Shown: piece by piece, positions 27,066 through 31,460 of the stretch
How the letters are laid out: every line of letters begins with the position of its first letter
How positions within the stretch are numbered: position 1 is the first letter of the stretch
Origin: Trichosphaerium sp. ATCC 40318
Lineage: Eukaryota; Protista; Tubulinea
DNA: 64,000 bases
Assembly (NCBI GenBank): GCA_038496445.1
Contig: JALMLS010000571.1
Coordinates: 62,001-126,000 of the forward strand
Direction of reading: 5' to 3'
Position numbers and translations under genes: made by a program
Notes under the pieces: model-generated
What the model was told of the DNA's origin: nothing
Databases searched by the model: none
The model's input: only the letters and a program-made list of their open reading frames with translations

Positions 27066-28717
27066 TTATAATTTGGAGCAATGTGCAATTCGCTTTAAGC
27101 CTTGTATGTGATCCGGCTCAATACCAACATAAACACGAGAATCCCGTGATGATCTGGCACTGAAAGCCATGCGTGGTGTATTGAATGATAAACCAAGACG
27201 TCCCAAAGAGTCCTACAAGTCAATCAGCAACGAGGCACAATCAAACAATGATCACCATTGTAATGAATCCACCTAGCCCATTAACTGTTTTCAACACTTT
27301 AATAGTATCTACTGAAGCTTTCCAGGGACAATCACCATACTCTAACTTGGATACAACGGTCCTAAGGTTCGATAAGAAATAATGAAATAAAAACAGAAAG
27401 GACGAGGTTGACCTTGTCCCAAGAATGCGAATGAGATCCTCCCCGTAGCCTAAAAAGTCATTTGTTAAAAAGTCAACTATTGCATCCTACCAGTGGCTGC
27501 ACTAGCACCAACACCATCGAGTAAATATGCGCCTGCTCCCCACAAAGGAGTATCTTAAGTGGATTAGAGATTTAGTACGTCAGTTTAGCGCGCACCTCCA
27601 ACTATTAGAGCATTAGTGGCACAGCTGCCTGTATTGAAGTACCTCTGCCAGGACGTTTGAATGGTGTTCCTCCTGTAGATACAGCAACAGCCATGTCTCC
27701 TTGAGAATCTATGCATATACATCCGACTGTACCCTTTTTTTGCATGTTAAACTCCTGAAGAGCTGGTGATTTGTCAAATGCTGATTTTGGTTTAAAAGAA
27801 GGATCCTTCATTATCTTCTGATACCGTTGAAACTCGCTTTCCAAACAAACATCAATAAAGTTGAAATAACCAAATTTGTTGACAAACTAATGATTCTAAC
27901 CTGGACGTCAAGAGCTCTTTTGGTTGTAAAGTGGTGATACCCTAAAAACAAAAGGTTAACTCTTTTTTTTATGGAGAACCACAATAACGCACTTGCTGTT
28001 TTGCAAATCTGTTTGCACCTTGGCCTACGAGCATAATCTCATCTGTCTTTTCCATAACCATGCGGGCTATGCGGATAGGGTTCTGGAAGGCCATTTTAAC
28101 ACATACTTCAGAAACATGTGGTTTCTGATTTTTTTCTTACCTGCAGATCCTGAATAGCACATACAGACCCAATGTTGTATCCTTTGGTTGCAATAATCTA
28201 TGAGCCTTGTTAGGCTGTCCCGTTATTATTATTTTGTATCACGCACTGCATCCATTTCAATCTGCCCGGCACTGTGTAAAAAGTTTAGTTAAAATGATGT
28301 ATTCTGCGAACAAAAATGTGGGCTTTTTGTTAGTTGCACGTGCCTGTTCACAAAACTACCTTTACCTGCATCAAATGTAGGATCATCTATATACCTGTAA
28401 AGCCAAATTGTGGCCGATTTTAGTACCTTCCATAGAAATGACTGCCTATTGCCGTTTTAATTGGTTTCTTTTGTCGCAAACGCTGTTTTCGTGCATCTAT
28501 GTCCCAAACGCACCTGTTCTACGGCGTCTACGCAATTTCCGCCATCAGCAAGAATATCGTGAGCAATACTAGCAGCTACGCCAACGCCACGCTTATGAGC
28601 ATCCACAGCGTTGTCCTGGGAGTTTTCAATTAAAACTCAGTTATTCCACCTTAGAATTCACATAGCAAAGCGTACAGGAATATTCCAAGCGCCACCGTGT
28701 ACAATTACGCTGTGCAT
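27066..28717 (-). CDS. ASRGL1: Isoaspartyl peptidase / plant-type L-asparaginase (Ntn hydrolase) ending in SKL
   Basis: VIVHGGAW, MEDDPTFDAGKGS, IEMDA, NPIRIAR, autocleavage GTVG, STGGTPFKRPGRVGDTPLWGAG, ATGYGE, FNTPRM; ends ..AHCSKL*. Confidence 0.93.
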
Positions 28718-29587
28718 GCTGATAACAGGTCAAAGTTTCTCACTTTGGAGCTTTAATTCGTAAAAACAAAACATCTCATTTCTTTGGAATAAACAGCTGG
28801 GCTTAGTGGTTTATTGCTTTGACGAGTGTTTTAACTATCCGTTACAAACTGTCCCACAAGGAATTGGCCGTGAATATCGACAAAAAAGATACCGATAATC
28901 ACGTTTTTCAGTGTTCGTCGTAGGCATAAATAACCTGAACAATTTCTGCCTTTGCACTACCTGAACGCTGCTTATACGATAACTCGCGCGCTTCAGAATC
29001 CTCGGAGGATCAACTTTTACTAAAGGAAAGATTCATTGAAAGGTACTGAAATAGTAAAAAAACAGTTTGTTTCACAAGTTATTATTGGTTTTATAAACAA
29101 ATCACGCAAATTACACCCGTCATTACAACGTATTATGTATATGTTTGGTTTAGTTCCTGTACTCTTGCCGCCTGTCTTCGGCTTACAGCTGATATGTGCT
29201 CTTCTCTACCGCTTACTCCAGTCAGGGCTGAATATCAATTGATAGGCGAATAAAGAGAGGAACAGGTGCTAGTAAGTCAGCTAATGGTCTTGTTGGAATC
29301 CTTCGACAAGAGTCAGCTCCCGCGAGTCGCAAGAAGAATCCTACTATTTACGCAAATAGGAAGGCTCTTAGAAAGAGACTACGCTTGGACGCATACACCG
29401 CGTCTTTTTTGCACTTTTGTACAATCAATTAAGAACAAACAAAGCATACTTGCAGGGTTCGCATAATTCTAGGTCGAAGCCGGCACGTCTAAATCGTGCG
29501 AGTTGAAAGACGATTGAAAGAAGAGTTGTTTTTATTTGGGTAAACACCTTAGAAAGCAACCGATATCTTTTGTTCAAGCAATTTAAT

Positions 29588-31256
29588 TTAGCTGTCTTCT
29601 TCTGGAGCTTCGGTATCAGTATCCAAAAGGATGTCTTGAGTGGCTTGGGTCTCTTCAATTGGTGACTTTTCTTCTTCGCTCTCATCCGAGGACGAGTCAT
29701 CTGAATCATCATCATCTTTTTCTTGAATGCCTTCATCGTCACTTGGTACGATTGGTTCTCCCTCATCTTGAGCAGCAATAACAACCTTCGAGAAATTACC
29801 CCTATACACGTGAATGAGCACGTGTTGTTTAATTCCAAAAATTGTGGTGCGCAAAAAAATCTTTTACGTACGACTTTTTCTTTCTGTTCACAAAGAAAGT
29901 CATGTAAACTACCCATGCGACAATGGTTGCGATAGATATTAAAGTAGCTAGATAAAATATCAGTAGATGTCATATTTCTAATGCATACCAATTACGACAA
30001 TAACGACAACAGATACCTTAGCTGTAGCTTTTTCTTCGACCTATGATACCAAACGGTTAAAAATAAACTCATCAAAAAAAAAAATAACAAAACTAACCTC
30101 TTGGATTCCCAATGCGAGTGGGATACCTTCAGTGCTAATGATTTTAACGCCAGCTGATGCCAAAGCAGCATCATCAGCATCAGACAAACCAGCGACAGCA
30201 TCGGAGATGACATAGGCGTCAAAAGAGAAAACTTTTGCGTCACTGGCAGTAGCGACAAGGCTCACACCACCAAGACCAACGATTAGAAGGGTGTTGATGC
30301 CTGCAGCCTAACGAAGAAGTTAGATATGACCAATATTCGAAGAGAACCGTACCTCCAAGTCGTTTTCAAGGGTAGTAAAGTTGAGGTGAGTGTTATCACG
30401 GAACGCGCTATCGGAACCTGTCGCGCACTCGATATTTTTCTTCATTATTACGTCACTTGGTTTTTGAATGAGTTGCTAGTAGAAATCAGTTTTAGAGGTT
30501 TTGTTTGCGGTTTATCTTTTTTTTGTGTATCACAAAAAAAAAAGATTCGGCTGTCTGGTTTAATACCTTTGAGAAATCAGATTCGGGCTGTCCAGCAACA
30601 CAAGAATCTTCAAGAAGCTAAACACGTGAACGGTGAGTCGTAAAAGGTTTTCGGTGGTGATAAAACCGTACCACTTGAACTAATTTCTTGCCACGGCTAG
30701 CTGGATCAGCTGCTGGGCATGGGACAGTGTATTCTTGCTAAAGCAGATATTAATGGTAACGCGGCTAACTTTTGAAAAAAAAACGGCGAAAGCGCTTAGT
30801 TTCAAAAAAGCGGTTTGTATGGATGCGTACTTGGTTAATTTCAGATTCACAGAGTTGTCCGTGTGCGTTGTAAAATAGCTCAACCGAATCTCCGGGATTT
30901 TTGCCCACGTGAACAGAGGCAAACGATATGTGTGTTGAACACTTCCATTCCTAGAGAATGACGTTTTTGAGAAGAGAAAAAAACAGGGTATCGTAAACCA
31001 ACCAAGCGGTTATTCAAAACCTACGCACCTGCGTCAATACCACTCTGGTAAACTCGTAGTCGTATTTTGTTCTGATATCATTAATAGCGAGGATTACTTC
31101 GTCTCCTCCCTTCACGCCAGCTGCTCCTCCAGGGAGGCTACAGTACTGAGCGTCTATAACGATGAGAGCTGCTTTTGTCTCAGTTGCTTCAGCGGCCTCT
31201 TGAGAGGCAACGAAGCTTACAAATACAACCAAAATAAGCGCTAAGGAGATGTTCAT
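29588..31256 (-). CDS. Type-I membrane protein with nicotinamidase/isochorismatase-fold ectodomain (predicted inactive) and acidic cytoplasmic tail
   Basis: Signal MNISLALILVVFVSFVAS; ALIVIDAQ..LPGG; TQEWKCSTHISFAS; SAFRDN; GINTLLIVGL..ATASDA; TM VSVVVIVVIATLISIATIVAWVVYMTFFV followed by RKKK and a D/E-rich tail. Confidence 0.85.
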
Positions 31257-31460
31257 TGATGCTGGCGATAGATAAAATGAGTGAGCACACGACGGACATT
31301 TGGCATCTACTCCGAATAAATGCGACAAAATCTACCCGAGAACGTTGTTTATGGTATAAGGTTGTTTATTAAAAGGTATGGTTAATGTAAGCAACCATTC
31401 GTTGGACAAGATTCAAAAAATCTTTTTTTCAATTTTTTTTTTGTATTTTTCGAGTACGCT

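Follow-up and report, generated by a model that had tools for sequence, protein, structure and literature searches.

The gene discussed here is related to the soluble nicotinamidases PncA and Pnc1, represented in the PDB by structures from Acinetobacter baumannii (2wt9), yeast (2h0r/3v8e), Pyrococcus horikoshii (1ilw), Mycobacterium tuberculosis (3pl1), Leishmania (3r2j) and Drosophila (9u8m). In Caenorhabditis elegans, PNC-1, studied by Crook et al., reportedly has a secreted isoform, and provides a precedent for a nicotinamidase working outside the cell. Full-text literature searches returned no description of a pseudo-nicotinamidase, nor of a secreted or transmembrane nicotinamidase. The stretch analysed here, referred to below as the window, comprises 64,000 nucleotides (nt) of contig JALMLS010000571.1 of Trichosphaerium sp. 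ATCC 40318, and carries on its minus strand, at 31256-29588, a gene for a membrane-anchored pseudo-nicotinamidase, i.e. a protein with the nicotinamidase fold and an altered active site.

The window protein has the fold in common with the soluble PncA and Pnc1 enzymes, at 22-28% identity, together with the Asp and Lys of the catalytic triad and the H-x-SF motif. Unlike them, it is without the Cys nucleophile, the Asp/His/His metal site and the aromatic cage, and it possesses a signal peptide, Cys residues of the disulfide type, a transmembrane helix and a tail. It also differs from C. elegans PNC-1, to which it can be likened by description and which is active as well as secreted. Our favoured reading, held with somewhat more confidence than doubt, is that this is an intact and expressed type I pseudo-nicotinamidase, descended from a clade of anchored, active enzymes, which now serves as a non-catalytic binding module sorted by its tail.

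Topology, fold and active site

The window has a GC content of about 40% and the introns are short, which marks it as eukaryotic. The gene has nine exons and a coding sequence (CDS) of 1140 nt for 379 amino acids (aa); all eight introns are of the GT..AG type, 41-93 nt long, and all are spliced out at their exact borders in transcript contigs from four public runs (X1, X2, X3 and X15) belonging to three studies. The longest contig, from X15 (1406 nt), ends in poly(A), seen as a T-run on the plus strand, and the exons for the transmembrane segment and the tail accordingly belong to the mature mRNA. An exhaustive HMMER search with exon 1 retrieved a 379-aa open reading frame (ORF) from an MMETSP transcriptome, P0001, which is identical to the joined exons of the gene and on which the full-length analyses were done; the exons were joined locally for the comparison with P0001, for codon effects and for the tally of synonymous sites.

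Residues 1-18 of the protein form a signal peptide with a 14-residue hydrophobic core, ISLALILVVFVSFV, and cleavage is likely after V-A-S and before Q. The ectodomain has a single N-glycosylation sequon and six Cys residues (39, 80, 110, 123, 144 and 172), and is followed by a hydrophobic stretch of 29 residues, V275-V303, which lies inside a helix predicted by AlphaFold2 (AF2) at 266-311 and ends in N-RKKK. Transmembrane stretches of this length are commoner in proteins of the late secretory pathway and plasma membrane. The cytoplasmic tail of 70 aa includes 14 Asp, 13 Glu and 9 Ser, and is disordered, with a predicted local distance difference test score (pLDDT) below 50 from residue 312 in the AF2 model. 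It contains DILLD and DDDDSDDSSSDESEEE, the latter an acidic cluster with Ser in a casein kinase 2 (CK2)-type context, whose resemblance to the tails of furin-like and mannose 6-phosphate receptor (MPR)-like proteins is at the level of composition. These features support the assignment of the product as a predicted type I membrane protein with a nicotinamidase-fold ectodomain.

The identity of the domain is seen at several levels. Pfam assigns it to the isochorismatase-like family PF00857 (34.6 bits against a gathering threshold of 27, E 2.6e-08), while exon by exon the sole match is a weak one to exon 6 (17.9 bits), the exons being too short. The best PDB match by sequence is 2wt9 (E 2e-19), with 1ilw, 2h0r, 3r2j and 3pl1 also found, and exon 1 alone matches 1ilw at E 0.0017. 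The AF2 model has a mean pLDDT of 83.4, rising above 90 over the globular domain (about residues 28-262), and displays a three-layer alpha/beta fold with a parallel sheet; in Foldseek its 11 best PDB matches are all nicotinamidases, with probability 1.00 and TM-scores, normalised to the target, of 0.80-0.90. By shape, the nearest cluster in the ESM Atlas is eukaryotic, mainly mollusc, and nicotinamidase-like; a feature search of the same atlas yielded nothing usable. The sole NCBIfam match is to the nicotinamidase equivalog NF008623, where the window protein scores 70.6 bits, under the cut-off of 174 that is passed by its active relatives P0024 (186.5) and P0035 (184). Assignment to another isochorismatase subfamily (YcaC, RutB, BiuH or isochorismatase proper) was considered and rejected, as both NCBIfam and the top 11 structural matches point to nicotinamidase.

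The changes in this fold were located by an alignment scan of 46 homologues, in which 55 columns are conserved in at least 85% of the sequences; the window protein deviates at 18 of them. The active-site columns and the roles of their residues are those that we take to apply from the Pnc1/PncA structures. On this assignment the three metal-binding residues are replaced (Asp by Glu77, one His by Lys79 and the other by Ser143), each at a column that is 100% conserved in the homologues, as are the three ring-binding aromatic residues, where Phe has become Ser40, Trp has become Leu140 and Tyr has become Asp177. The oxyanion-hole loop is shorter by one residue and has Gly209 for Ala and Val211 for Asp. 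The nucleophile column, 100% Cys in the homologues, is occupied by Ser212 in some alignments and by Leu213 in others. Changes at other conserved columns include Pro to Glu141, Gly to Asn169, Asp to Gly175 and Arg to Ala235. Asp35, Lys168 and His83 are retained; the Asp-Lys-Cys triad, the Asp/His/His metal site and the aromatic sandwich are each broken. Changes affect 8 of the 11 active-site columns and 10 of the 44 other conserved ones (Fisher one-sided P 0.003), so the loss is concentrated on the active site and spares the structural core. With the metal site, nucleophile and aromatic cage gone, hydrolysis of nicotinamide is very unlikely, and this activity is most probably lacking.

Much of this had been proposed in a sequence-only reading of the same DNA, and most of it stands. 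The signal peptide, the domain, the transmembrane helix of about 29 aa, the RKKK and the acidic tail are all present on the minus strand; the Pnc1/PncA-like domain is matched by solved nicotinamidases at TM-scores of up to 0.90; and the motif changes to TQEWKC, LLEDSC and GLGGVSLVAT, beside a kept IDAQ, recur in the alignment, so that the proposed dead enzyme fold, with nucleophile and metal ligands gone, is supported by both sequence and predicted structure. A cDNA lacking the transmembrane exons, which would have spoken against it, was not what the poly(A) contig revealed, as X15 carries both those exons and that of the tail. One detail needs correction: the losses themselves hold, but TQDWHP is not the appropriate reference, for the motif of the protein's own clade is [ST]QDWHC, which makes the Cys that follows the lost His ancestral.

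The retained residues raise the alternative that the protein remains catalytic with a different chemistry, namely a metal-independent hydrolase which uses Asp35, Lys168 and Ser212 on some other substrate at the exoplasmic face, or, in a variant of the idea, one with Asp35 as the general acid, as in true isochorismatases. In favour of this, the protein keeps the invariant Asp35 and Lys168, Ser212 stands at the Cys position in one alignment, the pocket has been remodelled coherently and not at random, and the gene is under purifying selection. However, Leu213 takes the Cys position in other alignments, the oxyanion-hole loop is one residue short with its Ala changed to Gly209, and the protein falls far under the nicotinamidase cut-off with no other isochorismatase subfamily model matched. 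Cys-to-Ser mutants are commonly made as inactive substrate traps. Among the Foldseek matches, 6xjm and 6xj4 are Cys-to-Ser forms of sister superfamily enzymes with substrate bound, and such complexes are consistent with binding without turnover, if Ser212 is at the Cys position. On balance an enzyme of this kind is rather unlikely.

The same losses bear on the suggestion, made in the sequence-only reading, of a chemoreceptor sensing nicotinamide-like metabolites at the cell surface. While the layout of ectodomain, transmembrane segment and phosphorylatable tail is receptor-like, and the domain comes from an enzyme that binds nicotinamide, the metal-binding residues are gone together with the Phe, Trp and Tyr that hold the ring (now Ser40, Leu140 and Asp177), and the disordered tail is without a recognisable signalling domain in Pfam. 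These replacements make even the binding of nicotinamide doubtful, and its sensing by this protein looks very unlikely.

Relatives, ancestry and selection

The search with exon 1 also retrieved signal-peptide-bearing nicotinamidases of other eukaryotes, such as XP_076459421 (P0035) from the mollusc Babylonia areolata, and all of the matches that reach the motifs retain [ST]QDWH[CP], LWPDHC and D[YF]C. The window protein falls within this eukaryotic clade in a maximum-likelihood tree, as part of a group of ten rows with a Shimodaira-Hasegawa-like approximate likelihood ratio test (SH-aLRT) value of 95, although the tree comes from a quick search and the placement of long branches is difficult; its own terminal branch is about five-fold longer than the median (2.58 against 0.54 substitutions per site).

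Members of the clade (P0035 and, from metagenomes and transcriptomes, P0024, P0049, P0021 and P0020) and the window protein have in common the fold, the Cys residues at DWHC/LC/xC/KGxxC and an insert loop. The clade keeps the DWH, LWPDHC and D[YF]C that are lost in the window protein. A C-terminal hydrophobic stretch followed by at most 10 residues occurs in 6 of the 10 full-length clade members and looks like either a glycosylphosphatidylinositol (GPI) signal or a short-tailed transmembrane anchor. In contrast to these short ends, 76 residues follow the 29-residue transmembrane stretch of the window protein (86 if counted from the best 17-residue window), most of them in its 70-aa acidic tail, and no relative has a long tail of this kind. 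The traits by which it belongs with the clade are its signal peptide, Cys pairs, insert loop, position in the tree and C-terminal anchor.

Cys80, Cys110, Cys123 and Cys172 are found in 7-8 of the 10 clade members and in none of 36 other nicotinamidases, and within the clade they are lost in pairs, 80 with 172 and 110 with 123. This pairwise loss suggests two clade-specific disulfides, putatively Cys80-Cys172 and Cys110-Cys123. Six ectodomain Cys had been counted before as possible disulfide partners; all six are present, but only these four are specific to the secretory clade.

Since the nearest intact relatives already have a signal peptide and extra Cys residues and, in 6 of 10 cases, an anchor, the exoplasmic, membrane-tethered layout is an ancestral trait of the clade and predates the catalytic loss. 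The premise of a cytosolic enzyme moved to the surface thus finds no support. New in the window protein are the loss of catalysis, a terminal branch about five times as long as the median and the acidic tail.

Gene structure in the clade can be glimpsed as well. In eight database ORF fragments (P0003, P0005, P0006, P0013, P0018, P0019, P0029 and P0042) homology stops right after [ST]Q and is followed by V, as would happen if a GT intron located where intron 1 is, and likewise in phase 0, had been read through, which implies that other eukaryotic members have an intron at this position.

P0024, P0035, P0049, P0021 and P0020 deserve notice in their own right: they are apparently active and have a signal peptide, two extra Cys pairs that co-vary and a GPI-like or transmembrane anchor at the C-terminus, which makes them candidates for ecto-nicotinamidases in molluscs and protists.

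The presence of apparently active relatives tethered at the same face of the membrane also allows for a regulatory partner, in which the window protein would form a hetero-oligomer with an active ecto-nicotinamidase paralogue and anchor, traffic or inhibit it, tuning extracellular nicotinamide. Oligomers are common among nicotinamidases, the regulation of active paralogues is a frequent role of pseudoenzymes, and retention of the fold and surface-forming core alongside loss of the active site would fit such a role. The branch of 2.58 substitutions per site suggests, on the other side, that the surfaces have diverged too, and we consider a partner role distinctly unlikely.

A further alternative is a decaying or functionless duplicate with an eroded active site, and here strain differences are informative. 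The X2 and X3 contigs, which carry a second strain or organism label, differ from the gene at five coding positions, all five synonymous, an outcome with P of about 0.002 given this CDS and four transitions and one transversion; a sixth synonymous difference, at 29990, was left out of these statistics. Three further differences fall within about 75 nt of the 3' untranslated region (UTR). The very long terminal branch, the lost active site and the failure of both exon-1 and whole-protein searches to find an orthologue would suit decay. However, the frame of 379 codons runs unbroken through nine exons, four runs belonging to three studies contain its spliced and polyadenylated mRNA, neither the structural core nor any of the four clade Cys has been lost, the model is confidently predicted, and every strain difference in the CDS is synonymous while three lie in the short UTR segment. 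The intact frame, the spliced poly(A) mRNA and the synonymous differences support the conclusion that the gene is under purifying selection and is not decaying, so that the decay envisaged beforehand as a reason to abandon the proposal is not borne out. A pseudogene was rejected on the same grounds, and a functionless duplicate is very improbable.

A word-based search with the whole protein returned only the protein itself and bacterial nicotinamidases of at most 36% identity; a search of the same type with the clade alignment as query filled up with bacterial sequences and missed the majority of its query rows, and is uninformative on further eukaryotic or dead members. Runs X4-X14, which come from other organisms, contain 5-16% of the sequence words. 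The absence of an orthologue from the exon-1 and whole-protein searches is weak evidence for lineage restriction, amoebae being thinly sampled.

Gene organisation and transcripts

The positions of the exons and of the residues discussed above are collected in Table 1.

Table 1. Features of the pseudo-nicotinamidase gene, with positions counted along the window
Feature	Position	Strand	Basis or remark
Extent of longest transcript contig, long 5' leader to poly(A) site	29514..31426	minus	X15 contig
Exon 1, aa 1-76	31029..31256	minus	gene model and transcript contigs; start ATG 31256-31254
Signal peptide, aa 1-18	31256-31203	minus	exon 1
Retained catalytic Asp35, first strand	31154-31152	minus	exon 1; invariant in 47 sequences
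Exon 2, aa 77-116: EWKC for DWHC; His83 kept; Cys80, Cys110	30831..30950	minus	gene model, contigs, alignment
Glu77 and Lys79 (metal-binding positions)	30950-30948 and 30944-30942	minus	exon 2
Exon 3, aa 117-138: clade-specific insert loop, Cys123	30672..30737	minus	gene model, contigs, alignment
Exon 4, aa 139-155: LLEDSC for LWPDHC; Leu140, Glu141, Ser143 (30605-30603)	30567..30617	minus	
Exon 5, aa 156-196: Lys168 (30439-30437), Asn169, Cys172, sequon N187-F-T	30353..30475	minus	
Exon 5 motif: GSDSAF where the family has DSYSAF	30353..30475	minus	
Exon 6, aa 197-266: GLGGVSLVAT for GLAxD[YF]CV; domain end	30098..30307	minus	
Nucleophile position, Ser212/Leu213	30262-30257	minus	exon 6
Exon 7, aa 267-284 (split codon): short stalk, first half of transmembrane helix	29989..30040	minus	
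Exon 8, aa 284-309 (split codons): second half of transmembrane helix, RKKK (29885-29874)	29872..29947	minus	
Transmembrane stretch V275-V303	30016-29889, including intron 7	minus	exons 7-8
Exon 9, aa 309-379: disordered acidic Ser-rich tail; stop 29590-29588	29588..29801	minus	

Intron 7 displays two junction forms in X1 and solely the shifted form (29949/29991) in X2 and X3. A second splice junction was rejected, as the shifted form fits the same intron with a T-to-A difference at 29990 (minus strand; ATT to ATA, Ile to Ile), which lies in the final complete codon of exon 7.

The 5' ends of the mRNA vary by run, lying at 31426 in X15 and at 31259 and 31261 in X2 and X3, one of them then running into adapter letters. 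The long leader (minus strand, 31253-31426) contains three upstream ATGs, at 31398, 31306 and 31299, and the TGA of a 17-codon upstream ORF starting at 31306 overlaps the main ATG as ATGA. The downstream neighbour on the same strand, at 27608-27844, is an exon of the Asparaginase_2 family (PF01112, E 3.5e-11) with a GTVG motif.

Proposed function and known parallels

On the reading of a tail-sorted, non-catalytic binding module, the ancestor would have been an active nicotinamidase of the secretory pathway, anchored at its C-terminus, of which the fold and the two putative disulfides were kept. Loss of the nucleophile, of the three metal-binding residues and of the aromatic ring-binding residues would have ended nicotinamide hydrolysis, and the pocket would have become more polar and acidic, with Glu77, Lys79, Glu141 and Asp177 new and Asp35, Asp142 and Lys168 kept. 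The ectodomain could then offer a non-catalytic binding site at the exoplasmic or lumenal face, and the newly acquired 70-aa tail, with its CK2-type Ser/Asp/Glu clusters and di-leucine, may lead to adaptor-mediated sorting among the surface, endosomes and Golgi. Overall, such a protein would be a cargo-receptor or sensor-like module.

In a more specific form, which we regard as unlikely though conceivable, a nicotinamidase has been turned into a receptor: its emptied pocket, with Lys79 at the former metal site and a new acidic ring, would bind a pyridinium-type or otherwise cationic metabolite or a protein partner outside the cell, and the phosphorylated tail would couple this binding to endocytic sorting or uptake. 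Nicotinamide riboside (NR), nicotinamide mononucleotide (NMN), nicotinamide adenine dinucleotide (NAD) and N-methylnicotinamide would be the candidate ligands under this specific proposal.

Several points weigh against a tail-sorted binding module. The signal peptide and topology were assigned from rules and hydropathy, and the selection evidence consists of five or six variants taken from assembled contigs. No orthologue was found, and exon 1 had no further match under E 1e-10 among 1.84 billion representatives. The di-leucine of the tail, QDILLD, matches neither the [DE]xxxL[LI] nor the DxxLL spacing, and as Asp35, Lys168 and His83 are still present, perhaps with a Ser where the nucleophile stood, a changed chemistry is possible.

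If the more specific proposal of a receptor for such metabolites is true, amoebae would possess a non-enzymatic means of capturing or sensing compounds related to vitamin B3, and this would be the first such receptor. The use of pseudoenzymes as binding modules is a known theme, and our searches turned up no account of one from the nicotinamidase branch of the isochorismatase-like superfamily. The gene offers a clean case, in which an RNA-proven gene model, an intact fold, a selectively removed active site and an added cytoplasmic tail come together. The comparison also brings to light a little-studied eukaryotic clade, found in molluscs, other invertebrates and protists, whose ecto-nicotinamidases are tethered to the membrane and apparently active, and this clade bears on how cells handle extracellular nicotinamide. 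For now the practical value is limited, the gene being so far confined to a single lineage.

Among known systems, the tail recalls that of sorted receptors of the furin-like and MPR-like type, which cycle among the Golgi, endosomes and surface and which it resembles in its acidic cluster, CK2 sites and di-leucine, whereas the canonical LL spacing of those receptors is absent. For the protein as a whole, a parallel may be seen in the neuroligins and gliotactin, cholinesterase-like adhesion proteins in which a dead-enzyme ectodomain is likewise carried by the membrane. By analogy, these too are single-pass type I proteins which use an alpha/beta hydrolytic fold without its nucleophile as a binding ectodomain and have a short regulatory tail; they belong to an unrelated fold family and to unrelated organisms, and the window protein would be a comparable arrangement built on the nicotinamidase fold.

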